A DNA stretch of 64,000 nucleotides from Basidiobolus meristosporus CBS 931.73 (lineage: Eukaryota; Fungi; Basidiobolomycota): the NCBI GenBank assembly GCA_002104905.1, contig MCFE01000025.1:1-64000 (forward strand), read 5' to 3'. Position 1 is the stretch's first letter; each line of letters opens with the position of its first letter. Below, piece after piece: positions 1-27,700 of the stretch. The notes under the pieces were generated by a model, which ran no database searches, was not told the DNA's origin, and saw nothing but the letters and a program-made list of their open reading frames with translations. The translations under genes were made by a program, and so were the position numbers.

Positions 1-18
1 AAAACCTTTTTTCCAATA

Positions 19-2396
19 GAGGCGGGGAATGCACCTTCCAATCCGACCTCGTTTTTCGCGACCGCTCCTATAGAAGCAACATTCAATGAGTTGTCGAATC
101 CGTGGGGGCCACATAGTAATGGTCTGATCCTCGATAACTTGCTTGGTAAGTGTTGTTTAACGAGTACAATGAGTTAATAGCTCGAACAGTGAACCCGATT
201 GCCTTAATAGTCGGTGTAAGCCTGGCACCAATGTACTCGGACGTTTTCAACATGGTCAAAACCAAAGAAGGCTATGTCACTATAGATGCTCTTCATAGAG
301 TACTTGGTGCGTCCGGGTTGACCGCTGGCATGATTGAGAAGGTAAGGCGATATATATGACTGCGTACTCAGAAGAAGGGTGATGTTAAAATTACGAAACG
401 TAGATACTGGCGATCACCCTTCCATATGGCGAATCCAACATTGATCGCAAGGCGTTTGATGTGATCCTCGTGTTAGTTGCCCTTGCCCAAAAAAACATGG
501 GTATGTGTTCATCTAGTGCAAACAAGTTATCCACGACACTAATCGCTGTTTCACATGTAGAGGTGTCACTCGAGAGCATTGTCTCACACAAACAAGGCAA
601 ATAATCTTCTTTCAGTTCATTCAGCGGCGGACAAGTTCTTAATCGGTGGCACATTCAGATTTGCCTATACCTCTGCTACCGAGGCTTTCCAATCCGGCAG
701 GTGCCACAGACTCCAACGTTGAACCGACAGACAAAATCACTTCGATCAGCAGACCCTCCCCCGCTTCACATAGCTCAGAAGCTCTGCACTTATTAGACGA
801 TAAAGACTTGATCTCGGTACAAATCTCTCTACAGAAAGGCGGAGTGATCTTCAAGCATGTGAACTACATTCTAGAATCCAAAGTAGGACGTCCTTGATCC
901 ACCCCAATCGATTTATCACTATACTCAACCGCCTCTAGCAACACCTCTCATCAGTAACCCGAAGGTACAAAGACTTTTGGTGGCTTTTGGAAATATTGAC
1001 AAAACGATACCCATCCCGGATGTTGCCTACACTGCCACCCAAAAAGATCGGAGGTATGCAAAGGAGCCATTGACTCGACATGATATTTTAACCTTACACG
1101 CATTATTAGGGGACAAGACGTTCCTTGAGAGGAGACGCAAAGGGCTGTCCAGATTTATCAACTTCATTGCACGCCATCCAGTTCTAAAGAATGACAACAT
1201 AACTGTTGCATTTCTCACTGAACCGACCGTAAATACGCACATTGCTCATGATCTTCACCATGTGTCCGGGATACTAATTCTTCCATTACCTAAAGAGTAT
1301 GGAAGCTTACCGGAAGTTAAATACCGTCGATGTAGAAGAGGAGTTCTCAAAGATAGAGGTTACGGATCAAATCAAGGCCGCGGTGCCCCATGATTTAGAA
1401 GAAAAGTTAAGGAAGCTACGAGAGCGCTTAGATGCTTCGGTTGAATATTATACCAACCAATGTCTATTGATGGAGCGCATCGCCAAACGACAAGAAGGTT
1501 TGCATCTCATTCTCCGGCTTTACGCGAAATCACCGTCGTACTAAATCCATCCAGGCTCCTCCGAAGATATGGAACATTACAGCAGGATACTAGTGTAAGC
1601 TAGTTCGATTTCGCCCTCATCCTGATTGGCTATGCATAACTAAATGTTCGCTGATATACTAGGGCATTGGGGGAAAGCCCATGTCACGATTCTGGCTGTC
1701 TCGAATGTCCTCAGATCATCAGCGGGCTCAACACAGTAGCTGATTCATTCATTCGAGTGAGCGCTATAATGAAAGAAGCAGTATGTCCAGCTGGTTTCAC
1801 ACGATGGTTTGAATGAGTGAGTGATAACACTAGTACTAGGTCGATTCTTCGGTTAGTGGTGTAGTCGACCATCTAAGGCGTCAGAAGGAGATTGTGCTTG
1901 CGTTCAAGGTAACTACTATCCAGCTAAGATGGCTTCGTAAGCTAAACCGGTATTCTCGCCAGGAATTACTGGATCGCAAGGAGAAATTGATCTCAAGTGG
2001 GACAGAAACACTGGCCAGCCGAATCAAAGCCAACCAAGGCAAAATCGACCAACTTCGCGGTTCTAATGGCCCGACCAAAGAGATTCAGCGGCTAACTGAG
2101 GTGGTCTCGCAGGTAATTCCCTCACGATAGACAAACCATTTACTTCGCAAACTCTAAGGAGTCTTCAGGACCGGAAGGAGCTTCACGATGCCAAAGAACG
2201 GGATATCTTCATTCAATACTGTCTTTGGAGGGAATTGCAGTTTTATCACCAGAATACAACCTTCGTTACCAAATTGTATCAGCAATATGTCACGGATCAA
2301 ATCCGATTCACCACGGTACTAAATCAAGCATGGAAAGACTTATCTCCCACAGTGTGGAGTCTACCCGAATACAACACGAATACAATCTACCCATAA
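19..2396 (+). CDS. MVP1: Sorting nexin Mvp1/SNX8-like (PX + BAR), multi-exon, 5' end lies upstream of the window
   Basis: Spliced exons give [32 protein letters not shown], the PX core [25 protein letters not shown], and BAR helices (VEEEF...[17 protein letters not shown]; WRELQFYHQ...YVTDQIRF). Stop TAA at 2394-2396. Confidence 0.85.
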
Positions 2397-2772: not shown

Positions 2773-5291
2773 ATGCCACCAGCGAGCAATGGTCGATTAA
2801 TGCACGCGAAAATGTCCCAGCTATATAACGATAGAAACGAGCCCAATTATGAAACAGCGTTCATTGATGTACTGCTAGACCAAAACGCAGACAACGTATT
2901 GAATTGGAAGACGTCCAAACCCTTGACAGACTCATTCAATGAAAAGCCCAAAGGACGTACCTGCATACTTCGGCTTCAACTGAACCACAAGTTGTTTTTG
3001 ATTTGTTTGACATGGTTTCTTCTGATCACTGCAGTTGGTACCTGTGTATTCATCTACGGTCTACACCTAGATCATGAGCGTGTACGGAGCCAACTATATC
3101 AAAACTGCGAACAAAACAACTACGGCGTTAGATCTGTTCTGATGCAACTGGCGAATGACTTTGAAAGCTATTCCAACTTTGTCCATGCAGTGAATCAAGC
3201 AATGACCCAAGAGATTTTTCAAAGTTTTTCTGAGCTTGTGGCCCGGAACAATTACAATTATTCCTCGAGTTGGGTGGGTTGACTATCATACGTGTAACTT
3301 GATGCGAACTTCACTCTAAGCTTCACTCGTATCATCTAAATAGTATCCGCTGGTTTTTCACCACGAGCGAGAGGAATGGGAGCAAAATAGCAACTGCACC
3401 ATTTCAACATTCATGAAACGGGGAAATACATTTGAATTTGTACCGAGTGCACCCAGGACCATGTACCTTCCTCTTCATAGTGTATTAGGAGTACCAAGCA
3501 CATATAAAGGTAAACGCTCTTATTCAAGCCCTTGAAGTGCTACATACCCAACTTTACACATAGGTCTCGATTTACTGCAGACGAATGGGAGCGCGGCTAT
3601 ACATGAAATCTTGACTACTAGAAAACCAAGACTCGTCACTTTTGCTGACATGCTGTATAGTAGGAGCGGTGTAATCGGCATCTATTTTCCGATTGATGCA
3701 GGTCTCACCGCTACGACAGATCACTCAGAGAATACAACAGCAGCCAAGGGTCCATACTCCCTCCCGCTTGGCCTATTCTCCATTACAGTCGATGAATCAT
3801 CGATAGCTGAAAAAATGGAACCGTTCCTTACTCCGGTGGGAAAATCATGGATCAGAATAGTAAATCTCTATGACAACTCCACCGTGTACCGCACTGGCGG
3901 TGAGATTCATGATTCTGAGGATTTTCTCCAAAAAGCGATATCCACAGACATGGCTTTCTGCGGCCAGGAATGGATAATTGAGTGTTATTCTTATAAGCCT
4001 AGTTTTCTAACTTCAACTACCCAGCTGCTCTTGTTATTGTCCATCCTATTTTGCATTATTTTCTCCACCATATTACTTTTCGTATTCACAAGGAGGTACC
4101 TTAAGGCCAGGAAGGAAGTTTTCCTTGGAAACCAAAAGCTTCATCTTTCCAATGCCCTAGTGAAGAACTTGGCTACCAATAGCAAAGCCATCCTGATGTC
4201 CATCACCGACCCGCTCTTGCTGTTCAACCGCGATGGTAAGATAACCGGCGCCAACGCTTACGCCTTGTCCAGGACAGGCTATACCTCTGATGATATCAGT
4301 AGTTCCTCCGAGCTTGCCATCAAGGATGTCATCAACATCGCCCAGTGGACAGGCAGTGTAACCCGCTTGGTGATTGAGCCAGGGATGCGCGAAGTCACCA
4401 TCACCTGCAAGAATGGGTCGCAGTTCTTTGCCGAGGCGAACTTCAGTGCACAGACTGTGATCGGGTCAAACTATGCACAGGTGGTCACATTCCGCGATAT
4501 CTCGGCGAAGAAGCAGGCGGCAATCGATCTGTGGAATGCGAAGGACAAGGCGGAGAAAGCGGACAAGTCCAAGGGGGACATCTTGTTGTATCTGTGCCAC
4601 GAGATCCGGAACCCGGTCCATGCGATTGGCGGGTATGCTCGGTTGCTGATGGAACAGATGGAAGATGAGGACGAGCCTTCAGAGGAGATGGAGAACATCC
4701 TCTGCTCCTCAAAGTTCCTCAGCGAACTGGTCAATGAAGTGCTGGATTTGGCCAATCTGCACGACAATGACCTGGTGTTGAACGAGAGAACGATCAGCCT
4801 GGCAGAGTTGCTTGCCACAATCAACCACCTGACATCTCCAATGGAAGGGAGCAAGTATCAGCTCACCTCCACGCTCACAGGCTCTGGCCAGGTGAGGGTT
4901 GTGTGCGACCCTAGTGCCCTCCAGCTGGTGATCCATCGGCTGGGATGCCTCTTGTCAGACTCGACTAGCATCGATGACCACGAGGAGGCCTTGATGCGAG
5001 TGGATGTGGTGCTAGTCAAGGAGGATGCGGAGTGCGCCATCATCAAGTACCTCATCCAGTGCCCAAACAAGGTGATCCCCTCGCACTACCTAGCCGTTGA
5101 CTTTGACCCGCTGGCACAAGGGAACGGCTCGATGGGGGATCAGTTTGGGATGAAAGGAATCTCACTAACTTTGACTCGGATCATGATCCAGAAGCTGGGT
5201 GGCAAGTTGATCTCCACTTCCGACACCAGGATCGGCACTCAGTTTAGCTTTGAGTTGCAGTTCAAACGGTCCCCAGACCATCCCTCATCAT

Positions 5292-5326
<35 letters not shown>

Positions 5327-6066
5327 CCCTCTCCATCATACCAGCCAGAGAGCCCTTTGGATGAGAATACAAGCCCTCCAGAGAGCCAGCCACATTCCGA
5401 GGGGTCAGTCCCTATCATCAGGCCCAGCACACCAGAGATCACCCGCAAGAAGGGGAAATCGAAGCAGCCACGCACAAAACCAAACAAGAACAGGGGTCAG
5501 CCACTCGGGGTAGAATCCAACTCGAGGGGATCGCCGATGGAACCAACAGCCAGCCATCACGGAAAAGTCATGTAAGTTGCCATTCCATTCAACATTTGTC
5601 TTGCGAGATCTGTCCATTTGCTGGCGCTTGCATACTACACATCGCTTGGAAGACCGTCCACTAACCTGGCGTCCCATGATCTAGCCTTGCTGAGGACAAT
5701 CTGATCTGTCAAAAATTGGCAGCCCGACTGCTCACCAAGAATGGGTACGATGTGACCACCGCGAACAACGGGTTGGAAGCGGTCGAGGCTGTGGAGCGGT
5801 CCCCTGACTATGATATAGCCTTATTGGACATCCACATGCCCCTGATGGGAGGACTCGAGGCTGGGCGGGCGATGCGGGAGAGACTTGGGTTTTCAGGACA
5901 GATAGTGGCATTGACAGCGAACACAACCTCGGAATACCAGCAGGCCTGTGTGGATGCCGGATTTGATGCCTTCGCACCAAAACCGATTAAGGAACAGGAG
6001 TTACTCACCCTGTTGACGCAACGTAGCTACGAATCAAAGGAAGTTTCAAAACCCAAGAGTGGCTAG
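2773..6066 (+). CDS. Hybrid histidine-kinase-like receptor 1: TM-CHASE-TM-PAS-HisKA-degenerate HATPase-receiver (4 exons; introns ~3274-3343, 3510-3563, 5572-5684)
   Basis: TM1 KLFLICLTWFLLITAVG; CHASE-type motifs W|YPLVFHHEREEWE, MYLPLHSV, GLDLLQTN, FCGQEWIIECY; TM2 LLLLLSILFCIIFSTILLFVF; PAS/PAC ending FRDIS; H-box CHEIRNP; receiver VILAEDN...LLDIHMP...ALTA...PKPI. Confidence 0.9.
4170..5984 (+). repeat. Direct repeat copy A (~1.8 kb): PAS-HisKA-HATPase-linker-intron-receiver cassette
   Basis: Near-identical to 7906-9683 by line-by-line comparison; flanking sequence on both sides does not align at DNA level. Confidence 0.97.
5285..5338 (+). repeat. (TCGTCC)n(TCGCCC)n hexamer microsatellite encoding poly-Ser/Ser-Pro
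   Basis: tcatcatcctcgtcctcgtcctcgccctcgccctcgccctcgccctctcca; contracted by 22 nt in copy B. Confidence 0.9.
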
Positions 6067-6559: not shown

Positions 6560-9500
6560 ATGCCAATCCCTGCTATATCGCGGAAAGGCTCGCATACAGG
6601 CACAACATTTTTTGACATACTAAACGATGACCCTGATGAAATCCTTGAAAATGAGAAGGATACAAGTTACCAAGAACCGCAAGATTGCGTACACAAACCC
6701 AGGAAAACCCGATTTCAACGATACAAACTCTTTTTAGTTTGTGCAGCCTGGTTTATAGTAACCTCAGTAGTTGGTGGCAACCTGTTTTACTATTCTTCCC
6801 GCATGGACAGGCAATCCATGCAAGAAAAACTGGCAAGTAATTGCCAACAGAGCACCAACATATTGAAGAGCACCCTGTCTCGACTGATCAACGACTTGAG
6901 TAACCACGCCTACTTTGTGAGCTCGGTAGGGCAGGGGATGACTTACGAGATGTTCTCAACATTCACCAGCTATGCAACTAAAGATAGTTTGAAGTATGCA
7001 TTGGCTTGGGTAAGGCTGCCTCCTCAAACATTGAAGCTAGCCATTCATATCACTCATAGTTTATTGTTTAGCAACCACAAGTGAAACAACACGAAAGAGA
7101 AGAATGGGAAGCACAAAACGGCATTAATATCACTATTGTTCAAGAGACATCGTCAATGTTGTTGAAAACCCCAAGTCCAATGCAACCTTACTACTATCCA
7201 ATCTTGTATGGAGTAATGTATGATACTGAACATATTGGTATGCACTAATTATACACGAATAACCTGGATCAGATCTCCTGAAACGTGGCTAACTTGAATT
7301 TTCAGGGATTGATGTGCTTCAAACAAATCGATCGGACACAATCCTGAAGGCATTGGGGACCTTAAAAACTGCAGTCTCTCCAATCAGTGAGTTTAAGCTC
7401 ATGGGGTTCGACGGGATTCGAATATACCTGCCTGTGCTGGTAAACCTCTACCTTACTGACAAAGGCGACTATAGTACTTTCAGAAATAACCACACCAAAG
7501 TCCACGAAAATGTACTTGGATTGGTTAGTCTGAGTGTGAGTATCCAGAATATACTCACGAATGCGATCAATATCTCCGATGGAAACTACATTCGGATCAT
7601 TGATAAAACCGGCAATGACTATATGATCTACAGCAATAACGGAAAGGAAGAACTTCCCGGCGATATCTTCGAATACAGAGAGGAGCTTTCGTTTGGCGAT
7701 CGTGAATGGCATATTTCTTGTTATTCCCCCCCGCTTCCTTTTTTCCCAAGCAAAACCAAATCTTCCCTCTTCTTCGCGATCATTCTTTGTACCATATTTT
7801 CTACCATCATTCTCTTCATCTTAACCAAAAAGTACCTCAAGGCCAAAGAGTTGGTATCCATTAGAAGCAAAATGCTTCAAGATTCCAATGCTTTGGTTAC
7901 CGATATGGCTACCAATAGCAAGGCCATCCTGATGTCCATCACCGATCCGCTCTTGCTGTTCAACCGCGATGGTAAGATAACCGGCGCCAACGCTTACGCC
8001 TTGTCCCGGACAGGCTATACCTCTGATGATATCAGTAGTTCCTCCGAGCTTGCCATCAAGGATGTCATCAACATCGCCCAGTGGACAGGCAGTGTAACCC
8101 GCTTGGTGATTGAGCCAGGGATGCGCGAAGTCACCATCACCTGCAAGAATGGGTCGCAGTTCTTTGCCGAGGCAAACTTCAGTGCACAGACTGTGATCGG
8201 GTCAAACTATGCACAGGTGGTCACATTCCGCGATATCTCGGCGAAGAAGCAGGCGGCAATCGACCTGTGGAATGCGAAGAACAAGGCGGAGAAAGCGGAC
8301 AAGTCCAAGGGGGACATCTTGTTGTATCTGTGCCACGAGATCCGGAACCCGGTCCATGCGATTGGCGGGTATGCTCGGTTGCTGATGGAACAGATGGAGG
8401 ATGAGGACGAGCCTTCAGAGGAGATGGAGAACATCCTCTGCTCCTCAAAGTTCCTCAGCGAACTGGTCAATGAAGTGCTGGATTTGGCCAATCTGCACGA
8501 CAACGACCTGGTGCTGAACGAGAGAACGATCAGCCTGGCAGAGTTGCTTGCCACAATCAACCACCTGACATCTCCAATGGAAGGGAGCAAGTATCAGCTC
8601 ACCTCCACGCTCACAGGCTCTGGCCAGGTGAGGGTTGTGTGCGACCCTAGTGCCCTCCAGCTGGTGATCCATCGGCTGGGATGCCTCTTGTCAGACTCGA
8701 CTAGCATCGATGACCACGAGGAGGCCTTGATGCGAGTGGATGTGGTGCTAGTCAAGGAGGATGCGGAGTGCGCCATCATCAAGTACCTCATCCAGTGCCC
8801 AAACAAGGTGATCCCCTCGCACTACCTAGCCGTTGACTTTGACCCGCTGGCACAAGGGAACGGCTCGATGGGGGATCAGTTTGGGATGAAAGGAATCTCA
8901 CTAACTCTGACTCGGATCATGATCCAGAAGCTGGGCGGCAAGTTGATCTCCACTTCCGACACCAGGATCGGCACTCAGTTTAGCTTTGAGTTGCAGTTCA
9001 AACGGTCCCCAGACCATCCCTCATCATCCTCGTCCTCTCGCCCTCTCCATCATACCAGCCAGAGAGCCCTTTGGATGAGAATACAAGCCCTCCAGAGAGC
9101 CAGCCACATTCTGAGGGGTCAGCCCCCATCATCAGGCCCAGCACACCAGAGATCACCCGCAAGAAGGGGAAATCGAAGCAGCCACGCACAAAACCAAACA
9201 AGAACAGGGGTCAGCCACTCGGGGTAGAATCCAACTCGAGGGGATCGCCGATGGAACCAACAGCCAGCCATCACGGAAAAGTCATGTAAGTTGCCATTCC
9301 ATTCAACATTTGTCCATTTGCTGGCGCTTGCACACTACACATCGCTTGGAAGACCATCCACTAACCTGGCGTCCCATGATCTAGCCTTGCTGAGGACAAT
9401 CTGATCTGTCAAAAATTGGCAGCCCGACTGCTCACCAAGAATGGGTACGATGTGACCACCGCGAACAACGGGTTGGAAGCGGTCGAGGCTGTGGAGCGGT

Positions 9501-9750
9501 CCCCTGACTATGATATAGCCTTATTGGACATCCACATGCCCCTGATGGGAGGACTCGAGGCTGGGCGGGCGATGCGGGAGAGACTTGGTTTTCAGGACAG
9601 ATAGTGGCATTGACAGCGAACACAACCTCGGAATACCAGCAGGCCTGTGTGGATGCCGGATTTGATGCCTTTGCACCAAAACCAATCAAAGAACGCGATT
9701 TACTCAATATTCTAGGCAGCAAGAAGCAAGCTCGCTCAGAGATAGAATAG
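6560..9750 (+). pseudogene. Hybrid histidine-kinase-like receptor 2 (same architecture), frameshifted before and within the receiver domain; truncated allele, young pseudogene or assembly error
   Basis: Same intron positions as copy 1 (~7010-7071, 7238-7305, ~9286-9384). CHASE motifs W|QPQVKQHEREEWE, YYYPILY, GIDVLQTNRS, FGDREWHISCY. A 22-nt deletion at ~9037 shifts the frame to TAG 9225-9227; a 1-nt deletion at ~9587 gives TAG 9602-9604. The ancestral frame ends at TAG 9748-9750. Confidence 0.8.
7906..9683 (+). repeat. Direct repeat copy B of the signalling cassette
   Basis: Matches 4170-5984 apart from about 17 substitutions and three deletions (22, 14 and 1 nt). Confidence 0.97.
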
Positions 9751-10768
9751 ATCGCCTTGTAGAAACGTATTTGTTCCATAATTATTAATTCCACTAATTA
9801 GCAATTTCTCGGAGTTTCACATGTATATATTGATACCACACATATGTAATGACTCGTTTGTTGACAAAAGAAGTAAAGCACGCAGCCAATCAATGTACTC
9901 TCCGATTTTTGCGATTTCGAGTATCCAATTGCCGCGCACCAGAAATCTCCACCAAGCAGAATTTAAGGTTAGAGTAAGGAATCTGACCCCAGTTCTAGAT
10001 AGTTCGAGCCGAATAGCGATCATCAGAGTCTTTGGCATCCATGACCGACGCGATAACCTCCCTCCCCATCGACGGAACAATTTCGGGAGACATGAAATCC
10101 CAAGAAGCTGTGACGTCAAGGGAACTAAGATTATTGTCACGCTGCACGGTCAGGCATGCAGGGGCAGCAGTACTCTATGGTAGACGGATAAAATGGGAAT
10201 TTCACAACAAAGCATAGAATGGAGCGAGAACTGCCTTTTTCGGAGGAAAAATCACAGCGCAACCTATGTCTGTTCACATCATCGTTTAGGGACAAACATA
10301 TCTTAAATGGAGTAGCTGTTGTTGAATGTATCAGCCCCGACTTGCAAGCTCGTTACTTGCGAAGATTTTGAGTCAAAATGGCAACTGGGATCCAATGCGA
10401 CCTGACAAATTCTCGATCATTGAAGTCAGCATACGTACCGTGCTGTCGCGATTTCTCTGGTGACATGGCGAAGGATTGGATCCGAATCAGACCAATCTTC
10501 GTTGATTAGCATTGTATATCATTGTGAAAATTGGGTTACCAAGGCTCTGCTTCGACTTACAGGCCGACACTTCCTTTTCTATATTTAGTTTATCCTAACG
10601 ATATCGGGAAACTTTGTGAAGAGATCCCATTTAGTCCGGCTATTTTGGTATCGGTTCAGTCCTACCCACTGCCCTGCCCATTGCAGTAGCCAACCGTCTC
10701 TGGAATATAAATAGTTGGCATCGTGGAAATACGCCACGGAATATTTGAACGGTGCTCTCAAGCGCAGA

Positions 10769-11321
10769 ATGGATCTAAAACTCCTCCTGAACCCGGACAT
10801 CACCACGACCCCCACCACCACACCAATTTTCACGAGAGAGCTAAGCTATCAGAAAGGCGCACACTATTGTTTATGGAAGGGATGTGGAAAGTCGTTTACT
10901 AGGAAGCCCGATCTCCTGAGGCACCAGCGGATACATACCGGAGAGCGTCCCTACAAATGCTCCTGGAAGGGATGTATGAGAGAGTTTATCCAACGCTCAA
11001 CACTAATCATCCACTACCGATCGCACACTGGCGAGAGGCCATATCACTGCGATTTCGTAGGATGCCACCAATCCTTTGTGGATGTAAGTACCGTCTAAGC
11101 TCTAGGAAGAACCGAGTTGGTTATTAACCCGCATACGCAAGTCTTCCTCTCTAGTCAGGCATAAACGAGGCCATACTGGCTATCGACCGTATGGATGTCG
11201 GCATTGTGAGAAAACCTTCACCAGGAAAACCTCGCTGACAAGACACTTACAAACATGCCACCAGGAGCTGGGCCATATATTCGGGACATACCACAAATCT
11301 TTTGGCTCAGTCAAAAAGTAA
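10769..11321 (+). CDS. Small C2H2 zinc-finger protein with four fingers (intron ~11084-11141)
   Basis: [36 protein letters not shown]...[14 protein letters not shown]...|[40 protein letters not shown]; TGERP linkers; stop TAA at 11319-11321. Confidence 0.9.
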
Positions 11322-11666
11322 CCTACCTGTGGACCGATTCATAGAACATATCATCATAGTAGCATTTTTGAACCTCAAAATCATCGGAAAATGGATTTCC
11401 CTTCATTGAACAAGGAGAAGATGGATAGATTTGTGTGTATAAAAATCCTTAAATTTCTAGATCATCATCTTGCCTGGTTTGTTTGGATAAATGCAGAAAT
11501 TTCGGAATATTCAACAACCAACTTGGTCTTATTTTAAACTTGATCTGTTTGATGCTGGCTGAGGCTAAGACGTTTCTTTTTCATTTGATGGAAAAAAATT
11601 CTTCAAGTAGTGTCTAGTTATTTAAATTATCAGCTCTGATTCTCTACTCCAGTACTGGGTGGGCAA

Positions 11667-12894
11667 ATGACTTCGACTTACTTTAAGCCTGGTGTGTATG
11701 ACATCAAAGTTGGGTCTACGTTCGAAGACAAGAATGACGACTCCTTCTATACGTTCAGATGTAGGAAAACTCGAGGTCCGTTTTGTTGTGCGTACGACAT
11801 ACTTATTTCTCTCCATCCCTAGACAATTTCAAGCCCGATTCGATCGATTACGCCAAAGATGCAACCTTACAAAAGGAGGCTGACGGCCAGTTTTCTGTCG
11901 AATTCCAGAGTCACCAGGTATACACAGCTTGGAATTCCGCTTTCTGTTCAAGCTAACCTATCCGATTTTAAGGAAGGGGAAACCCATTCTTTCAAGGGCA
12001 CCCAGACTCCCTCCAAAGATATAGAATGTCTTCTTATTTACGATGAGGAGACAGGGGTATGCATTCTTCTTCAATGGTTTTGCTACCTCGATGCTAACTC
12101 ATTATCCAGACTTTTACACTTGAACGTCAAGCCTCCGCATTTACTTTGAAGAATGTTCGACGTTCAAAGGCGACAGATATGGAATTAGATCCCACACCTT
12201 CCCTAGTCTTACCTGCTTCGTCAAGCGTCCCCAAATCACCAGGTGTCGGGGTTACTCCAGGCTCTGAGAAGGATGGTGATGAAATGGACCTGGATCTTGA
12301 CACGATGTTAGAGGAGGAGATTGACAAAGCCCTCGATGCTGAGCTCGGGGAATTGGATGGAGACGACGAGAAATCAGGGGACGAATTCGAAGAAGTTGAA
12401 GTTCCAGAGATCAAAGCGCCTCCACCAGAGCCTTATCCACGCACACCCAGTCCAGCCCGCTCTCCCTCACGATCACCTTCCCGGACAGATAAAGGCAGGA
12501 AAGATACTAAGCGTGGATCATTCAGTTCCTCTTCATTCTCTTCCTCCGGGTCTGGTTCGAGTTCCTCCGGCTCAGAGTCCGATTCCGGATCCAGCTCATC
12601 CGGGTCCAGCTCCAGCTCGGGGTCTAGCTCGGGATCAGACTCGGATAGCTTTTCAGATTTGGAAAAGGATATCGAATCGGGAGTCAACTCCGATTCGAAA
12701 AAGAAAAAGCCATCCACTGAGGAGCCCAAGGTATTTTTCACGTAGAATTCTAATGTTCTTGCTCATTCACTAATCATCAACATAAATCACAGGCACATAG
12801 CGGTCCTATCTCCTTGAGTGCTCTCTTAGGGGACGATGATGACGACGGCAATGAGAGAGACGAAGCCGGGATCACTTCAAGTGATGAGGATTAA
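11667..12894 (+). CDS. EAF: ELL-associated factor (EAF family transcription elongation factor), multi-exon
   Basis: N-terminal EAF-type motifs FYTFR|YNFKPDSID and HSFKGTQTPSKDIECLLIYDEETG|TFTLE, followed by an acidic/Ser-rich tail ending GPISLSALLGDDDD...SSDED*. Confidence 0.75.
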
Positions 12895-13004
12895 CAACAA
12901 CGCAACCTTACTTTTACACTGTATGTACATTATATTAATAAACCTTGATTTCATAATATGTATCATATAGGTGTTGTTTATTTACATGGGGCTATACAAT
13001 TACT

Positions 13005-14100
13005 TCACACGGATATTGCTCTAGACACAAGGTTCTCGTTCTCGATGTAAGGAGGTGGTTGTACAAATGGCGAGTTGGGAGTCTCTGAGAACGTGTATGG
13101 CGGCAACGACTGGACTACGTCCCTGGTGTTCGATGACAACACGAGCACTGGCACCTCTAGAGAGACTACTCTGGTTCCCAAGTGCGCATCCTTCAATTTG
13201 ACTTTGAAAGCCAATATATGGTCGACAGTGAACCATTTGGTATTGCAACTGAAGTGAACGTTGCGTGGAGAAATGCGGACATTTAAAGAGAGAGATTGAG
13301 ACTGTAATTCCCGTGGGGAGATGCTGCTCAGCTTGATCCAACTCTCCTCAACAAGATTAGTGTCAGCCTTGGGTATATGGTTGGTGATATTCTCTCTGAT
13401 ATAGCAACCAACTTTCAGGATTTGGGTGGTAGACCGGATCCGGTCAAGCTTGAAGTCGACAGGAATATTCTCGTCGAATCCCACCATCCTGCTAGGCAGG
13501 CTGATTTCGTATGTTAGGATATTGCTCCATTCGGAGCAGAGATGGACAGCCTGGGCAAGCTCGGAATTGAACAAATCAGGGTAGCGACGAACAATGATTT
13601 CCTTTCTCGTCACCGTGTTTCCTCGCAAAAAGCCTCGATATAAGGTTGCTTCCAGCTTGTATTCGATCCCACCGTTATCCAAGTGGATGGTCACAGGCAA
13701 AGAGCCGTTGAAGACATACTCGAAGTCAAAGGTATGTACACCCGCCGGCAAAGTGTGGTTTTTTGGTCCAGGCTTCACAAGTTCCCATCTTCTATCAACC
13801 AAAGCGTTATTTGAAAAATGCAAAATTGACTGGTTACCACGAACTTGAAAGGACAAACGATAATTAGCCCAAACGAACTTCTGGTCAATAGTGTGCGTCT
13901 ACTCTCTTACCTTCATTCCAATTTTGATAAACAACCCCCAGCAATTGGAGGTCTAACGAGACGAAAGATATCGCCTCCTTAAGATTCAGTATCACGCTAC
14001 CCCTCAGTAGAGCACCCGCGGACTCGGGCGGTGAGCCGTTGAAAGCAAGAACCTGTTGCTCCAACAATATCTCTAGTGATAGCTTCTTCTTGATAATCAT
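13005..14100 (-). CDS. Alpha-arrestin (arrestin-N/-C domains with PY motifs), 2 exons
   Basis: Exon 1 LRGSVILNLKEAISFVSLDLQLLG; exon 2 LPAGVHTFDFEYVFNGSLPVTI...GGIEYKLEA...WSNILTYEISLP; C-terminal LPPY and PPPY motifs. Confidence 0.9.
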
Positions 14101-14611
14101 GGAATAATATGGCAGCACGGTGAAATCTATTAGCGCTGCCAATACGGTTATATATATTTGGCAATGTTTCCTAGCCCCAAGTAATGCAATATCTTCAATA
14201 GAATTTCATTGGGAGCGAAAATCCCTCATTCCCAGAGATCCTGATTCGCCCAAATCCAGAGTAGCAGGTGATGAGCGATTTTTGCTCAGGAGTATTTGGT
14301 AACCAATTACACGTTAACCTGCTTCGTGACCATGGTCAAGGTGAAATTCCACACACTAACAAATATTTACGACTTCTCGGTTAACTTATTCGTGATATTA
14401 ACCAACAACGTCAGTACCACCAATCAAGGAATTCTGCACCACATGGGCCACGAGAAACAGAACCGAACCCCTTGAACCCAAATGCAATTATCAGTGCCAA
14501 TGTTCTCTAAATGACCTATAAGGTTTATCTGCTCCCTGATTGCGATAAGGGAGGGCTGTTTGCTCTTCACGTGCGATGATCATCTCGGCGCCTTACAAAA
14601 CCTTTTACTAA

Positions 14612-14739
14612 TTCTAGAAGCATTTTTCAACAACAGCACCTAACTATTTCTAGAAGCATTTTTCAACAACAGCACCTAATTATTTCTAGAAGCATTTTTC
14701 AACAACAGCACCTAACTATTTCTAGAAGCATTTTTTCAA
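14612..14739. repeat. 36-bp minisatellite, about 3.5 copies
   Basis: Unit TTCTAGAAGCATTTTTCAACAACAGCACCTAACTAT starts at 14612, 14648, 14684 and 14720; head-to-tail, no spacers. Confidence 0.95.
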
Positions 14740-15836
14740 TGGCAACATTCCACCAGCTCTAGGATTAATATCAAAATCGAAATACTCCCCAGCCACAGGA
14801 AGTTTTTTCTATTTCAGTCCTAAGGTTTATTCCATGCTAACTTTATTTGATCCCACCCCCTAGTTTTCCCCAAAAATCATATTAAGGAGATTTGGAGGGA
14901 AAACCTTTGACCGGCAGTTGAATAGACAATGGGGAGTTTTAAGACTGTTGAGGAGTGCATGCCTCGGTCTAACGCATACAATGGTGGCCCACTAATTTGT
15001 GTTGATAGGCATTCGCAACCAGCATCGGGCCAACCATTGAGCTAACCATTGAACCACTGCACGGCTATATGTATGTAGCACAATATTGCGATCACCGAAT
15101 ATCCATACGGACATATCCTCCTTTAGCTTATTAAAATATCACAGATCTTGCGCTTTAGATGTATCGTAATCACCGAGACCTTAATCAGGCCATTCCGCAC
15201 GTGTTAGTCAATGCCGAAGGAATGCGATGGTTTTGCAGAGGAAATACGACAGTTTAGGGGAGGGGAAGCACATCTGTATGGTTTTCGTCGAGTGTCGTGT
15301 GGCTAAATATAGTATATGCTCGTGCTCAGGATAGTGGTGACTATATAGTTGAGATACAGCTCCCACGCAGATGCAATGCCTACTATCGTGTATCGGCCCC
15401 TATCCCCAAGAAATTTGCCAGAGTGACCCAAGGTGTTGATTCGAAGGCATAAAGTGACAACAACCTTCAGTGTTTTGGCTGCATTGCAACAAGAATAGAT
15501 GGGTTCAACGAAATTCCGACTAGCAATTAGCCTGGGTTCCAGATCTCTTGCGTCCAAAAGGCCCTGAAACGTAGGTTGATACTGGGCCATTGCTTCAATA
15601 AATATGTATATGTCACGAACAGCATCCCAGACGTTTCAATTGAATATATTTAAGGTTAGTGAATAATGATCCATCAGTAGGATCCGTTGATATCTTCCGA
15701 TATGTTTTCTTTAAATAGCAGCGGTAGCGCGCGATGGAGAGTCAGATCTCCCACTTTTTGCATCTCATCCTCACGTTTCTTCCACCTTTTTATATACTGC
15801 ATTCACTCCATTTCAGTACCACACAAATACCAAACC

Positions 15837-16390
15837 ATGGCCTACTCGATTGCTCGCGCCCAACATAACCCTAACTACAAGGCTCTTCCACACACATTGA
15901 TCAGTAAGTCCATAGACATCCCCGTTCCACCTCCAACATCGTACTAATCGAGCCATCAGATTTCACCGCCGAATCGATGTGTAGCCTTTTGAACTGTAAA
16001 AATCGCCCATTAGTGCACATTTCCTTACCAGAGCTCTTGCTGTTCATTGAGCGTCTCACCGAAAGGTCGGGAATTAACACCATCACAGGGGTGGTTGCAC
16101 TTATATACGTCTACCGACTAAAGGCGAGACTTCCCGCAAGGGCCCAGGGGGAGTACGGGACCTCCCACCGGATCTTTCTGTCGAGCTTGCTGGTCGCTTC
16201 GAAGTATTTATACGGGGAGGAGAGTTTAAACAATCGCGCCATGGCCGAGATTTCTGGGGTGTTCACCACCGCGCAGGTGAACCTCATGGAGAAAGAATTC
16301 CTCGGCCTGTTGGATTATCAGGTCTGGGTCAACGACGAGGAGATTCGGGATTTCCTTGAAGAGCATAAAGCAGAGCTTTGCTTCTTTTAA
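15837..16390 (+). CDS. Pho85-type (Pcl) cyclin, 2 exons
   Basis: LPELLLFIERLTERS...VVALIYVYRLKARLP...GTSHRIFLSSLLVASKYL...NNRAMAEISGVFTTAQVNLMEKEFLGLLDY is a Pcl1/2-like cyclin box. Confidence 0.9.
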
Positions 16391-17398
16391 ACCACACCGC
16401 GATTCGACGGAATCCACGATATCCTCCACGCCCTTTCCATCCGTTGATTGTGATGTAGATATTCATGTATATAGTTAATCTAATCCTAGTATTATAAACG
16501 ACAGTCCATTTTGCTATGTTGCGTATCAGAACCCATCCTGATAGATACCAAGCACTCACCCAGCTGCATAGTAATAGTCTTGGGTATCCAACCTAACGCC
16601 AGATACACCGATTGTCAGATAAGCACATGTCATCGATTGTCAAGGTTTTAACCGCGATCCTCTCCACAGTCCACGGAAATAAATGCTATTCGATGACAGG
16701 TGATCTGCTTCTCGATTTGCCAGATTGGGTGGGTGTGACATATCTGGTAGGACATTGTACTTCTTCCTCTAGTTGGTGGAGCATCGTCCCTCTTCCTCTG
16801 TCCACGTTAGGTCTAGGTGCTGATGTGATGCACGGGATGGTCATCTGCAGTCACACCAACCAGACCTGGTTGGTCGCAGATGGATATTATCAGCAGGCCT
16901 ACTCGTACGATATATGACGTTGGGAGCGACACCACCCGGTTGTTGATAACCCGAATCATCATTACAATCCTGATTGTAGAGTGGTCGATAATTATCCGAA
17001 TCATCATTACCACCCTGATTGTAGGATTCTGATCTCTATTGTTCTTATTATTATTATATACGCTTACCTTCTATCTGTCGATAATGTAGCGTCATGGGAT
17101 GCATTATCCGATATGTCGAACAGATTGCCTTGAGTTAGGTATTGTGAATTAATACAAACATGGTCACCAATTGCGTTCATTGAGTGTTGGATGGTCAGTT
17201 ACACTATTGTTCCGACTGGCAGTGCTGGCTAGTCCAGGTTTGTCCACATCTGCGATTAGTTTAATAGTTGGTTTATTTTTACAGATTTTTTGATTTGATT
17301 ATTGGCATGGAGGGAATTCAGGTCCAAGATTCAGATTCATGACTTGTGAGAATTAGCATATACATAGGGGTGACCGGTACAAGCCTATCCAATAGACC

Positions 17399-21769: not shown

Positions 21770-24700
21770 ATGGATCCTGATAAAATCAATGTTGCCATCA
21801 GGGCAAGACCCTTAAATCAACGGGAAATTAGTAGTGGACAACGTTCCGAATGGACAATCGAAGGAAATAGTATATGCTTAGCTTCACAAGATAATCGGGC
21901 GCCTACGTCAACATACTACTTTGGTATACTCTAAAGTATTTTGAGACCCTGTTTTGCTGTTCTCTAAGCTAGCTTCTATTATTTAGACAAAATTTTCTCC
22001 GAAGAAGCAGATACAACCGAAATATACGATGTCGTGGCAAAGAATATTATACATTCCACCATGAACGGAGTTAATGGTAGTTTACTGGTTATGATCTGGT
22101 TTTGTTTATTATTCAACTCACACGGTTATTTTCTAAAGGAACCATTTTCGCTTATGGTCAAACTTCTTCTGGTAAAACGGTAAGATAAACAGAGTATTCT
22201 AAGTGTACGCCTTACAAGATTCACTAACTTTGGCAATTTTGTCATCATAGTTTACTATGCACGGTACCAAAGAGGAGCCTGGTATTATCCCTATGGCGAT
22301 CGAAGATATATTTCGCTACATATTGGAGACCCCTGATAGAGAGTTTCTTCTGCGCGTCTCTTATTTGGAAATATACAACGAGGTCATCAAGGATCTGTTG
22401 AATCCAGAAAACGAAAACTTGAATATCCGTCAAGACCCTACACGTGGTGTCTTTGTAGGAAAACTCACCGAAGCTATCGTGCTTAGTCCTGAGGAAGTCA
22501 TACAACTCATGAAGAAAGGAGAAAGCAATCGACACGTTGGTGAAACAAATATGAACGAGAGAAGTAGTCGTTCTCATACGATCTTTCGTATGGTTATCGA
22601 AAGTAGAGAAAGATCCAAGGAGTCGAAACGTGATTCACAAAGTAATGTGGGTGGAGCAGTTAAAGTATCATCCTTGAATCTCGTCGATTTGGCTGGTTCA
22701 GAAAGAGTTGGTCAAACTGGTGCTGAAGGTATCCGTTTGAAAGAAGGAGGACACATTAACAAAAGTTTGCTTGCTCTGGGGACAGTCATTGCTAAGCTAG
22801 CCGAACAAGAGAACGACCGTGGACATATTCCTTATCGTGACTCGAAACTGACTAGAATCTTACAGCCATCACTTGGTGGGAATGCCCGTACAGCTATTAT
22901 CTGTGCCATCACTACTGCAAGTAATTTTTATGAAGAAACGACCAGTACGCTCAAATTTGCCAGCAGAGCCAAGACTATCAGCAACAAACCCGAGGTTAAT
23001 GAAGTTCTTACTGATGAAGTTCTTCTAAAGAGATATAGAAAACAAATCAACTCCTTGAAGAAGCAACTTGACGAAGTTAAAAATCAGAAAGATGACGAAG
23101 ATACTAAGGGGCCCAACCCTGACGAAAAGCTGCAAACCATGCTCAAGGAGAAGGAAGAGGAAAAGACCAGGCTGCTTTCCCACTATGAGAAGCTTAAAAG
23201 AATGATCCTCACTTCTACACACATGAATTCTTCCGCAGCGATTAAAACTGCGCAAAAGGTTAGAAGACGCACTTGGTTCCCAGGGTTCAATAATGATAGA
23301 AATGAAATCAACCAAGAAGGAGCTGACACAGAGCAAAGTAATAACTTTGAGGTCAACCGAAAAGCGGAGCGGGTCAGCATCGTTTCTCAGAAAACCAGTA
23401 CGGAGATTCTTGATCGGGTGACTCATGAGATGACCAAGATCAAGAAAGAAAAAGACGACTTTTCTGCCCGTGTAAATACTTTAGTAGATGATCGTCAAAA
23501 GATTATTTCATCTATAAAGGAGCTTGTTGAATCGGAGCTATCAAATCAACAGCTGGAGACTTTGCCTCAAGAGCTTAAATCACTTGGCAGTTATCTGCAT
23601 GAACTCAAGTCGTCCCTAGAGTACAACAAATGTGTTATTCAGAAGAATGCCGAGGTATACTCTGAAACTGAGCGATTCTTACAAATGGAATCCAAATCCA
23701 TTCAGAATGCATATCAAGAAAAAATCGACGAGTATGAGAAGTCTATCAAATCGTTGCAGGTTACCATCGAGAAAACTCGGAATCAAATGGAGGAATACCG
23801 GAGAGCGCAGAAAGAGGCTATCGAAGAGCGTGACGCCGAAATTCAGGTCGCCAAAAAATCGCTTGCCGATATTGAAAGCAAGTATAACGCCGTTGTAGAG
23901 AACAAAGAGAAGGAATTACTGGCCTCTCAGACTGAGATTCAAACTCTCACTGAAGCAAAAACTTTGCTTGAAGAGCAAGTCGAAGAGATTAATGCTGAAG
24001 CTGATGAGCTTGTTCTGCAGTTCAACACTCAACTTGAAGAAAAACAAGCGGAAATAGAAAATGCCGTTCGAAAGTTAAATGAACTTCAAGAGGAGTACGA
24101 CATAGAATTACAAAATCATCAAGCAGAAATCCAAGATTACCAAGCTCAATTAGAGACCATCGCAGAGGAACATGTGCAGATTGTTCAAAATAGTCAAGAT
24201 GAGCTGAACAATGTCAAGGCGGAGCTTGAGAAGCTACAAGAGGCTAAGGCTCACCTAGAAACTATGAAACAAGAAGAACTCGCACTTTTGAAGGAGCAGA
24301 TGTCACATGAAGCAAAGAAAGCGGAGGAGGAAATTCAACTCATTTCGGAGGCTCGTGATAACGCTAACAGTGACCTAGAAGAATTGAGAACCCAGCTTAC
24401 AGCAATGGAAAGTACCCATGAAGAGAAATCGAGGGAGCTTGAGGATAATATTCGCCGTCTTTCTGAAGAGCAGGAATTGGCTGTTGCTCAGAATGATTCT
24501 CTTAAGAAAGAAATATCTGACATTCAGAGCCAGTATGACTCTCTTGTTGCTGAGCATTCCTCTACGAAAGAAACGATCTATCAGCTAGAGCAGCAGGCTT
24601 CCGAAATGACCTCAACAAATGAGAATCTTCAGAAATCTTACCAAGAAGTAGATGATCAACGCCAATCTCTAGAAGATCGAAATACTGAACTTTTGTCAAA

Positions 24701-27700
24701 GTTGGTGCAGTTAGAGGAGCGCTTGGTACTCTCTGAAAAGGCTGCTACCGAATTGAACGAAGATTTGGCTAGGCTCCATACGCTCAAAGCTGAATTTAAT
24801 TCTAAAGTTGCGGAGGTTCAAGATTTGCAATCGTTGGTTTCCGATCTTAAGGAAAAGCTAGAAGCATCGGATTCTCAGATCACTCAGCTAAGTACTCAAG
24901 GCGAAGAATTGTCCAGTAATTATGAGGAAGCCAAGACTCAACTTTCCAAGGCCGAGGATCTGATTTCCAGTTTGAATCATGAAAAGAATGATTTATCTGA
25001 GAGATTAGTCCAGTCACAAAATCTCAATGCCGAGCTCAAGCAAGCGATGCAAGGAAGCGACTCTAGTATGTTTGAGATGCAAGAGACCCTCGAAGCTGAG
25101 AGGCGCAAAATTGCAGAGTTCCAATCTAACACTAAGCAGCTCGCTATTCAACTAAGTGATCTGCAAGAGAATCTTGATTCAAAGGAGTTGGAACTCTCAG
25201 AAGAAGTAGAGAAGAGCAAGTTGAAATTGGATGAGCTTCGTGAGCAATCTCAACGCCAAGTAGAAGAGATGAAGGCAGAATATGAAGAGATGCTTGAAAA
25301 AATGAGATCCGAGCTTGGCGAAGCACGTGAGTTGACCGAGCAAACTGAGCAGCAAAAGAACGAGTTGGAGGTAGAATTTAAAGGAATGCTGGATTCTGCT
25401 TTCGAGGAAAAAGATCTCGTTTTGGAGCAGCTTACAAAGTCACAAGAAGAATGCGAGTCTCTGAGAGGTAAACTGACTCAGTACGAGGAGAAAATTGCCG
25501 AAACAGAAGCACTTCTTGGCGAGCAACAGTCGCAAACCCAGGACTCGTTGAAGAGTCTACAAGAGGTTACTGCTATCAAAGGTGAGCTTCATTTGAAGAT
25601 TGCTATTCTGAAGCAGCAGCATACTTCAATCATGCAGGAGCACAAGGAAGAGATTCAAGCACTTCAGAGTTTGCTCGAAAAAACTCTTTCACATTTTGTT
25701 TCATATGTTGAGCAAAATCAAGCCGAACTCGATCAGCTGAAAATTGAAAAGCAAAAAGCAAGCGACGATTTAGCTCAAGCAAACAAAGAACTAGAGGAGT
25801 GGAAAGTTAGCGCTAGCAACAGTGACGATCGACTAGGCAACATTGTCAAATCACTTGAGCACGAAAAAGAAAGATGTGCCCAATTAACTAACGAGATCGC
25901 CAATGTCAAACGCGACTTGGAGTCGACCAAGGAGACACTCAAAGAGAAGAATACACAGATTGAACTTCAATGCGATGAAGCTGAAGAAGCTCTGGCCCAG
26001 GCAAATGAGGACTCTGCCGAAAAGATTAGACAATTGAAAGAGATCCATGCTGATCAGATTCAAGATCTCGAGCGTTCCCTAGAAGAAAGCGTTGCCGCTG
26101 TGAAAATGGAAAGCAGTGAGAAATTGAAGGCTACTATCGATTTGTATTCTGGCAAGATTAGAGATATGGAGGGTAAATTGGAGGATTCTAATAACGAGTT
26201 GAAAATTCTTCGGAACACATTGTCGGAAACCGAGAAGAAGTACAAGCAGTTGAATTCCAAACTTGAAGGTGGAAGTTATACTCCCGTTCAAGATTATCAA
26301 AATGCAGTCGAAGCTCTTCACGCGTATGAGTTGGAACTTACCAAGACTTTGGAGTTGCTGAAAAATGAACGAGCTCAAAGTGAGGCTTTCAAACAAAAGT
26401 ACTATATGTTATCAGAACAGCTCGATAATGTCAAAGAACAAATGCAAGAGCAGGAGTTGAATATTTCCAACCAGGCAACACATGATTTCGAAATCAAGAT
26501 CAAACAGCTGCAGGAAGAACACAATCAAGCAATTGAATCTCTTCGCAAGCAACTTAAAGAATCCGAAAGCAGCCTTGATTCTTCCAAGAGTTTAATCAAT
26601 GAACAGGAGAATAAGTTAAAGGTACTGGAGGAGACTCATGCTCGAGACATACAGTCATCTTCGAAACAATTGGATGAACTTCAACAAGCGCTCGATGCCT
26701 CTCAGCTTGTTGTCACTTCTCGGGATGAGATGATCAAGGAAATCGAGAACAAATACACTCAAACCATAGATGAGTTACGTGCAAAGATTTCCGAAACCGA
26801 ACGAGATCTTGAGATTACTGAACAGATGGCTTCTGATCAAACAACAAGCGCAAAAGAGCTTGCAGCAGATGTCGAGTCTCTTCAATCAGAAATCCTGAAG
26901 ATGAAGGAACAGAATGCTCAATTACAAACGAAAAACTCGGATTTGGAGAGCAAACATCAAGAACTCATCGCCTCTGTTGCAGATTTGCAAACACAATTAG
27001 AAGCATCAGCCAATATCTCTCAGGAAGCAATGGATCTAAAGACAGAGCTAGCCGAGGCTGATAAAAAGCTTCATGTTGCCAATGAAAAGCAAATGACTCT
27101 CCAAGATCAAGTCCAGGATCAAAGTGAACAGATCAAAGATCTCTCCGAGGAGCTCGAGAACCTTGGCAACGATCTTAAAGAGCAGCTGTCAAATGCGGAA
27201 GAAATTAGTCGTTTGAAGAGTCAGATGTCCGACTTGGAAGAAAAACTTCAAATTTCTGCCAGTGAAATTTCATCCTTCAAGCGCGAGAACGAACTTCTTG
27301 TCGAAGAATTGGCTCATTCAAAAGATAAGATCGAACAAGTAACATCCGAGTTGACATCCGGCGAACACGAAAAAGCTGTAAACCTTCTCAACAGTGAGTT
27401 GTCTGATAGAGAATCTGAGCTCCGTAATATCCGCAAGGATTTGACAAACTACAAACAAGAAACGGAAAAAGAGATTATGAATCTGAAGAAAGAAGGCAAG
27501 CTAGCATTGGAGACGTTGGCAGAGGAATTTGAGAAAAAGGAGAAAGCTTGGCTTTCGGAGAAAGACAAATATGAAGCTACCGAAAAACAGCTTCAGCTAG
27601 AGATTGACCGAAACCAAGCACTCTTCGCCAAAGAAAACAAACTCAAATCCCTCAAGGTTGTTGAATTGGAAGATAAAGTGCGTGAATTGACGGAGAATTT

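Follow-up and report, generated by a model that had tools for sequence, protein, structure and literature searches.

Fungal CHASE hybrid kinases have been proposed as sensors of plant hormones and have been assumed to be ordinary kinases. These 'cytokinin receptor homologs' reportedly correspond to group XIX of Kabbara et al. 2019. In their general plan a CHASE domain enclosed by two transmembrane (TM) segments is followed by HisKA and a receiver, and one such kinase is counted in Basidiobolus in the passage of Herivaux et al. 2017 that cites it as illustrating gene erosion (PMC5285503). As far as the text of PMC5285503 was searched for such terms, it holds no discussion of the state of the CA domain of this protein, Bm|296463|. 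Here we analyse the locus that encodes it, a tandem pair of plus-strand genes, A and B, lying in the first 64,000 nucleotides of a contig of Basidiobolus meristosporus CBS 931.73 (MCFE01000025.1:1-64000, hereafter the window, whose coordinates are used for the locus). Bm|296463| is the product of gene B; the tandem twin, gene A, is almost entirely unannotated, so that the figure of one CHASE kinase given for B. meristosporus in the literature is too low. Each gene has the arrangement TM-CHASE-TM-PAS-HisKA (DHp)-CA-like domain-Ser/Pro-rich linker-receiver. Set against that general plan and count, the Basidiobolus proteins come as a tandem pair, carry a PAS domain between the membrane and the DHp, and possess a degenerate CA domain. 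By descent they clearly belong to the HisKA hybrid kinase superfamily, as their HisKA domain, fold and receiver indicate; judged from their residues, they fail the defining motifs of functional autokinases.

Degenerate CA domains are already known as a phenomenon, and gene B itself has been published. A DHp joined to a CA-like domain without autophosphorylating activity is found in ChpT and in the ethylene receptors ETR2, EIN4 and ERS2, as well as in DivL and PsmA. The Basidiobolus proteins differ from each of these groups: ChpT and Spo0B are soluble and have neither sensor nor receiver, whereas the Basidiobolus proteins combine a CHASE sensor in the membrane with PAS and with a receiver fused to the core; and in subfamily-2 ethylene receptors the His and the other kinase motifs have mostly been lost, whereas Basidiobolus retains the His along with the phosphatase motif and a full receiver. 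A D/ExxT/N motif has been cited as required for the phosphatase activity of HisKA proteins, its loss being read as loss of the activity (PMC12963549). RetS from Pseudomonas aeruginosa, also a hybrid sensor, siphons or removes phosphate from another kinase instead of feeding a regulator (PMC12189002). Its DHp-CA is among the best structural matches of the Basidiobolus protein (TM-score 0.67-0.74), although this likeness is at the level of the fold and RetS acts on GacS by heterodimerisation.

By analogy, the closest functional likeness is to two other systems, the phosphatase mode of the plant receptor AHK4/CRE1 and engineered kinase-minus/phosphatase-plus variants of EnvZ. AHK4, a CHASE receptor, dephosphorylates HPt proteins by way of its receiver Asp973, and its kinase-poor wol allele is still active in this respect (PMC6963811). 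The Basidiobolus proteins share with it the CHASE receptor plan and a receiver Asp of the kind that in AHK4 takes phosphate back from the HPt and releases it; however, the CA domain of AHK4 is canonical and makes it a kinase when cytokinin is bound, whereas evolution seems to have locked the Basidiobolus proteins in a kinase-off state, and there is no close sequence relationship between them beyond the shared domains. In EnvZ, according to the work as cited in PMC5727384, the N347D change, which is the Asn to Asp replacement at the same (second) N-box Asn as here, gives a kinase-minus/phosphatase-plus protein capable of reverse phosphotransfer (Dutta and Inouye 1996), and the DHp by itself is a phosphatase (Zhu et al. 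2000). A DHp with H-E/D-x-x-T/N suffices, as cited there, for phosphatase activity and reverse phosphotransfer. These are laboratory variants of a non-hybrid bacterial kinase, whereas in Basidiobolus a eukaryotic hybrid kinase carries the change naturally, and G1 and G2 have gone as well.

An earlier reading of the window from its letters alone (the sequence-only reading) had proposed that the core between 4598 and 5262 is dead towards ATP but keeps the phospho-accepting His, a phosphatase residue and the receiver Asp. Every motif string that it quoted lies where it had been placed, 4598 being the start of the H-box His codon and 5262 falling at the CA domain's end. The comparison presented here uses a MAFFT alignment (A1) of the DHp+CA from window positions 4541-5293 with two homologs from Basidiobolus ranarum and 47 canonical bacterial kinases; columns conserved in at least 80% of the canonical set were tabulated, and residue numbers such as N133 refer to A1. 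Columns that are 98-100% invariant in the 47 canonical kinases are replaced in the N-box (Q129L, N133R, N140D, K143S), in G1 (D174C, G176N, G178V), at F191 (F191L) and in G2 (G204M, G208S), where G206 is the sole G2 glycine kept. In canonical kinases the replaced positions are Mg-ATP contacts, and the G1 Asp, which contacts the adenine amine, is invariant across GHKL ATPases. The CA residues that are retained (D123, F188, G206, G221, S227, G232 and F235) have for the most part a structural role. When GacS (7z8n) and HK853 (2c2a and 4jas), kinases of solved structure, were aligned by HMMER, the placement of the residues was identical. The motifs CPNKV at G1 and GMKGISL at G2, taken by the sequence-only reading as signs of decay, are thus borne out in gene A, the D-G-G of G1 having become C-N-V and G204/G208 having become Met and Ser.

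The substitutions are not private to one gene or species. Those to Cys, Asn, Met and Ser are common to genes A and B of B. meristosporus and to their B. ranarum counterparts P0003 and P0090. In every Basidiobolus copy covering G1 (the fragment P0002 of B. ranarum ends before it) the G1 Asp is Cys, and in place of the G1 glycines stand Asn and Val/Thr. No substitute Asp or Gly was placed at G1 when the sequences were aligned to canonical kinases and to kinases of solved structure. The N-box presents a more mixed picture. Its second Asn, the Mg ligand (N380 in HK853, N347 in EnvZ), is replaced by Asp688 both by MAFFT and by HMMER against HK853 and GacS; at this position Asp is found in B. meristosporus and in P0002, and Asn in P0003 and P0090. 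The claim that the N-box is degenerate therefore stands for its first Asn (now Arg) and its Lys (now Ser), but not for the Mg-ligand position, which is filled by Asp, or by Asn in P0003 and P0090. Alternative Asn or Asp residues in canonical positions had been named as the observation that would overturn the idea of a dead pocket: one such residue occurs in the N-box, and none in G1. Because the G1 Asp is Cys and the G1 glycines are replaced, an Asp or Asn at the Mg position would be insufficient to rescue the pocket.

Profile searches lead in the same direction. As had been suggested, HisKA and HATPase_c profiles were aligned: HisKA scores above its cut-off in gene A, and HATPase_c below its own in all Basidiobolus copies scanned (14.9 bits in gene A, 19.8 in gene B, 18.9 in the public gene B protein P0001 and 24.7 in P0003, against a cut-off of 26.4), and in both window copies the HATPase_c match covers only the C-terminal two-thirds of the profile. 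PF02518 was present in 84/84 non-Basidiobolus matches of the homolog search. Judged from these alignments, the degeneration of the CA domain is well beyond ordinary family variation. With the G1 residues, N133, K143 and two of the three G2 glycines gone and the Pfam match below threshold, the loss of canonical ATP binding appears well supported, and autokinase activity has very probably been lost with it. Two cysteines may be mentioned beside these results: the one that replaces the G1 Asp (5060-5062, with the same positions in the B. ranarum loci L001 and L004) is conserved in all copies covering G1, and a second conserved Cys stands immediately before the N-box Asp (V/I/L-C-D).

Prediction of the structure, another check that had been suggested, returned an ordinary DHp+CA fold. 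The AlphaFold2 (AF2) model on A1 (mean pLDDT 82, pTM 0.75) consists of a DHp hairpin of two long helices, 2-42 and 48-74, and an alpha/beta CA domain, confidence being lower in the ex-ATP lid and in the loop that follows the N-box helix. When the model was compared with the PDB by Foldseek, which bears on the overall fold only, the matches at probability 1.00 were exclusively histidine-kinase cores (GacS, RetS, ZraS, HK853, WalK, CpxA and DivL), the best being GacS, RetS and HK853, with E-values down to 1.8e-15. According to the model, the CA domain is a folded homolog with the normal DHp+CA (Bergerat) fold, not a disordered remnant.

The phosphoryl-handling parts of gene A are retained in full. 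Its HisKA Pfam match reaches 44 bits (cut-off 26.9), and all the conserved DHp columns are kept (K11, L15, H20, E21, R23, P25 and G31). The H-box HEIRN with its His, Glu at +1 and Asn at +4, as first described, is seen both in the codons of gene A and in A1. At +4 a Thr is found in 85% of the canonical relatives; Asn and Thr are both compatible with the HisKA phosphatase motif. Once intron 5572-5684 is removed, the receiver reading frame joins the linker, with the junction K-V-I-L-A-E-D-N as in P0003 and P0090, and the receiver residues can be located: E895/D896 at 5692-5697, the phospho-acceptor D940 at 5827-5829, T969 at 5914-5916 and K991 at 5980-5982. The retention of the acidic pair, Asp, Thr and Lys is thereby established for gene A (Response_reg E 6.9e-21). 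In gene B, E-D, D, T and K appear only when both of its frameshifts are read through.

The same locus can be followed in B. ranarum (GCA_040143965.1), where the arrangement is the same but is spread over fragmented contigs. The order PX/Snx8-BAR, A, B, C2H2 zinc finger, unknown gene, arrestin, cyclin is shared by both species (window 1-2396 and 10700-17000 for the flanking genes). Synteny and the substitutions common to both species imply that duplication and degeneration are older than the species split. In B. ranarum the 3' half of A and that of B each have an open frame. A further paralog fragment, P0002, lies on a separate 1.5-kb contig (L002, JASJQH010011702.1) and runs from the end of CHASE through TM, PAS and DHp to the start of CA; it is distinct from the A and B orthologs, has a degenerate N-box with Arg at the first Asn and Asp at the second, and could represent either a third gene or a haplotype that has diverged.

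Selection was estimated by the Nei-Gojobori method, with omega (dN/dS) taken from the within-B. ranarum pair P0003 versus P0090. This comparison, which covers CA, linker and receiver and leaves the DHp outside, gives dS 0.70, dN 0.094 and omega 0.135 for the CA domain, whereas omega is 0.16 in the receiver and 0.47 in the linker. Across the two species synonymous sites have reached saturation (pS 0.8-0.9), and the GC content at third codon positions (GC3) is 0.72 in the conversion tract of B. meristosporus and 0.45 in B. ranarum, so that dN alone was used: gene A versus P0003 gives 0.30 for CA, ~0.11 for both DHp and receiver and 1.45 for the linker, the CA value being ~5x below that of the linker. 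The constraint within CA is uneven. In the ex-ATP lid and G2 helix 32/40 residues are identical between gene A and P0003, as compared with ~35-57% in the rest of the domain. Selection thus seems to act on a surface of the CA domain and not on its nucleotide pocket, and purifying selection on a dead CA supports a functional rather than an eroding protein.

The degenerate CA type is, so far, confined to Basidiobolus. A HMMER search with the CA-only profile A3 through 1.84 billion cluster representatives gave only P0001 and P0090 below 1e-30; the next match after Basidiobolus stood at 1.3e-10, and the four matches examined in detail, P0091-P0094, are of canonical type: D-x-G-x-G, G-G-T-G-L-G-L and the Asn residues of the N-box are all present. 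A word-based protein search with residues 60-400 of P0001, its CHASE region, yielded no other protein than P0001. Hits that combine CHASE with HATPase were P0078, P0079 and P0082. Horizontal transfer from bacteria was considered, since the nearest canonical relatives are bacterial-type, and was set aside, identities of ~25% being uninformative.

The coordinates of the features are given in Table 1. The main exons of genes A and B correspond to long plus-strand open reading frames (ORFs), 3611-5575 and 7314-9227 respectively. For gene A, a 4-exon model was built from homology to the B. ranarum proteins P0004 and P0003 and from canonical splice sites; the joined exons (gene A, 2773-6066) form 1018 codons with 0 internal stops. 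Similarity searches were run per exon, the joined model serving for the counting of codons and stops. Exon 3 gives Pfam matches to HisKA (E 2e-11), PAS_9 (E 5e-4) and, below the cut-off, HATPase_c (E 0.037). The CHASE profile PF03924 (cut-off 25 bits) is matched by P0001 at 28.2 bits and by P0004, the B. ranarum ortholog of gene A, at 27.8 bits; exon 1 of gene A taken alone gave no Pfam match to CHASE, the joined model lying outside that scan. As read from the sequence, hydrophobic segments flank CHASE in both genes. In GenBank gene A is represented by its receiver alone, a 126-aa stand-alone 'response regulator' at 5686-6066, and its sensor-PAS-DHp-CA body (2773-5571) has no public gene model.

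Table 1. Positions of the features of the tandem CHASE receptor genes of B. meristosporus and of the corresponding B. ranarum loci.
Feature	Position	Strand	Support or remarks
Gene A exon 1: N-terminus, first TM, start of CHASE-like sensor	2773..3273	+	tblastn of P0004 residues 3-148; GTGGGT donor at 3274; unannotated in GenBank
Gene A exon 2: CHASE-like sensor, continuation	3344..3509	+	P0004 homology
Gene A introns 1 and 2	3274-3343, 3510-3563	+	GT...TAG ends
Gene A exon 3: end of sensor, second TM, PAS, DHp, degenerate CA, Ser/Pro-rich linker	3564..5571	+	holds ORF 3611-5575
DHp (HisKA) domain	4541..4786	+	H-box H-E-I-R-N; His568 codon CAC 4598-4600; Glu +1; Asn +4 at 4610-4612
Degenerate CA (HATPase_c-like) domain	4787..5269	+	A1 alignment; AF2 pLDDT 82; Pfam below gathering threshold
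Remodelled N-box helix	4907..4984	+	Q129L, N133R, insertion of 3 residues, Asp688 (4958-4960) in place of the Mg-ligand Asn, K143S
G1-box remnant	5054..5080	+	D-x-G-x-G to C722-P-N724-K-V726
Ex-ATP lid and G2 helix	5081..5200	+	G2 = G-M-K-G-I-S-L; most conserved stretch of CA
Gene A intron 3, 113 nt	5572..5684	+	GTAAGT...CTAAC (branch site)...TAG
Gene A exon 4: intact receiver	5685..6066	+	Pfam Response_reg E 6.9e-21
Gene B, tandem paralog (JGI 296463 = K493DRAFT_296463 = P0001)	6560..~9750	+	diverged CHASE sensor on near-identical PAS-DHp-CA-receiver body
Gene B copy of DHp and degenerate CA	8277..9029	+	tblastn; protein 99.6% identical to gene A
Gene B frameshift 1	9036..9037	+	22-nt deletion vs gene A in CCTCGN (Ser-Pro) linker microsatellite
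Gene B frameshift 2	9586..9587	+	1-nt deletion in G-run inside receiver
B. ranarum L003			PX/Snx8, then A 5' half (P0004)
B. ranarum L001			A 3' half (P0003), then B 5' half (P0005)
B. ranarum L004			B 3' half (P0090), then C2H2, arrestin and cyclin genes

Gene B adds less to the argument than its presence might suggest. From about position 4170 the two genes are near-identical (A 4170-6007 versus B 7906-9706, ~99%), whereas their sensors are ~35-45% identical. Over 4170-5300 they differ at 11/1131 bases, 10/11 of the differences being synonymous and 7/11 lying inside the DHp+CA stretch. GC3 is 0.72 in the shared tract but 0.47 further 5' within that exon, the B. ranarum orthologs having 0.45, and the composition profile shows a jump in GC at the same tract. 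On these sequence features, the shared 3' tract indicates GC-biased gene conversion, and gene B, whose 3' half owes its ~99% identity to that conversion, is not an independent replicate. The observation that the same degeneration is present in both copies stands as such; what does not stand is its use as a sign of independent retention, since it reflects recent conversion. As assembled, gene B is also frameshifted, and its receiver is incomplete. Independent evidence for degeneration comes instead from the B. ranarum copies. Besides its two frameshifts gene B has a harmless 14-nt deletion in its intron relative to gene A. The public model 296463 skirts the lesions with odd exons and stops inside the receiver, without the acidic pair, the Thr or the Lys. 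The indels would represent either real pseudogenisation or assembly errors. Within B. ranarum, A and B are more alike in the PAS region than the cross-species orthologs are.

From these results, the main function of the proteins is held here to be, on balance, probably that of a ligand-modulated phosphate sink or phosphatase, or of a reverse relay, acting on the Ypd1 relay. Gene A, and likewise the part of gene B that precedes its frameshifts, would encode a membrane CHASE-PAS receptor with a DHp module and a complete receiver, in which the CA domain survives as a folded, non-catalytic regulatory domain. Lacking a canonical ATP site, such a receptor could not start a phosphorelay unaided. Phosphate originating from putative canonical hybrid kinases of the genome and carried by the HPt protein Ypd1 would run back to the receiver Asp940, where hydrolysis would be aided by the phosphatase motif of the DHp, or would be stored on His568, and the ligand at the CHASE sensor would set the rate of this drain. 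A phosphatase, sink or phosphotransfer role is consistent with the precedents of EnvZ N347D, the isolated EnvZ DHp and AHK4. Several points weigh against it. The phosphatase activity of many HisKA proteins is enhanced when ADP or ATP occupies the CA domain, a stimulus that would be missing in gene A; the Asp or Asn at the Mg position, together with G206, G221 and F188, is kept and may allow weak or unusual nucleotide binding; gene B is frameshifted as assembled, so that at least one copy may be dying; and gene A is without a public gene model.

A different use of the same residues would be that of a trans-phosphorylated subunit: the receptor would form a heterodimer with a competent kinase whose CA domain phosphorylates His568, and forward signalling would be kept. 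A model for this is provided by the subfamily-2 ethylene receptors, which are thought to act in complexes with subfamily-1 receptors. The strong conservation of His568 and of the whole DHp (dN ~0.11) favours this explanation, as the His would be dispensable for a pure receiver-based sink, and hybrid kinases, plant AHKs and ethylene receptors are known to heterodimerise (PMC6963811, PMC12189002). The difficulty lies in finding the partner. DHp pairing specificity normally restricts heterodimers to close paralogs, and two protein searches gave no close canonical paralog with a matching DHp, the next matches being bacterial-type with ~25% identity; the DHp domains of A and B are identical, and the paralogs P0002, P0003 and P0090 are all degenerate where covered. 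We therefore regard trans-phosphorylation as unlikely.

The conservation of the ex-ATP lid and G2 helix, the best conserved part of the CA domain (32/40), might also be read as that of a binding or regulatory surface in a pseudo-enzyme or scaffold independent of phosphorylation, in which the DHp-CA surface binds a partner and the state of the sensor is passed on by contacts, in the manner of the bacterial pseudo-histidine kinases DivL and PsmA. This is improbable as well: the conserved lid is equally explicable as a CA-DHp docking surface gating phosphatase activity, and retention of the His, of ExxN and of all the receiver catalytic residues, with a receiver omega of 0.16, argues that phosphoryl chemistry is still in use. 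DivL and PsmA, by contrast, are without a phosphorylatable His, and PsmA is also without ExxT/N (PMC12963549), whereas His568 and E-x-x-N are present in Basidiobolus.

That the proteins are still autokinases, with non-canonical ATP binding in which Mg is chelated by Asp688 or the Asn in its place and the role of the G1 Asp is taken over by other residues, is very unlikely. An Asp or Asn does occupy the Mg-ligand position in all copies, and what remains includes the Bergerat fold, F188, G206 and the glycines of G3; against this, the G1 Asp is Cys in all copies covering G1, both G1 glycines are bulky, N133, K143, G204 and G208 are lost, the N-box helix carries a 3-residue insertion, and EnvZ with the single N to D change is, as cited in PMC5727384, already kinase-negative. 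Least likely of all is gene erosion, that is, a decaying cytokinin-receptor-like remnant whose dead CA domain marks early pseudogenisation, as the two frameshifts of gene B downstream of CA, the failure of Pfam to recognise CA and the presentation of the Basidiobolus CHASE kinase as an example of gene erosion in the relevant passage of PMC5285503 might suggest, because in gene A four exons bounded by canonical splice sites join into a clean frame of 1018 codons, the B. ranarum frames are open for the A and B 3' halves, CA has an omega of 0.135 and a dN ~5x below the adjacent linker, the same replacement residues persist across species, and the gene B indels lie in a microsatellite and a homopolymer run and could be assembly errors.

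A more specific form of the preferred phosphatase or sink reading is put forward only tentatively: a Basidiobolus 'wol-type' CHASE receptor whose only outputs would be reverse phosphotransfer and phosphatase activity, that is, a ligand-responsive drain of Ypd1 with the ex-lid as its switch surface. If this were true, it would be the first eukaryotic HisKA pseudokinase retaining its His, phosphatase motif and receiver, a wol-type receptor that has been under purifying selection since before the split of B. meristosporus and B. ranarum, and a tandem pair in which differing sensors are joined to a single, homogenised signalling body. What is new in this locus is the residue-level stripping of the CA domain, its purifying selection and restriction to one genus, the finding that the published gene is the frameshifted copy beside an intact twin, and the functional reinterpretation that follows. 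The useful assays shift accordingly from kinase activity to phosphatase or sink activity towards Ypd1. The Basidiobolus clade could also serve as a natural system for the study of a DHp-receiver module without nucleotide and of why a CA domain is kept after loss of ATP binding.

Elsewhere in the window, an uninterrupted plus-strand ORF of 2060 codons (22257-28439) matches the Kinesin motor domain in its N-terminal 241 residues (E 4.5e-86), covering profile positions 92-327, the start of the motor probably being in an upstream exon. This ORF, which looks ordinary, accounts for the strong purine skew at 22-28 kb. A 36-bp tandem repeat of 3.6 copies with 96% matches lies at 14607-14735.

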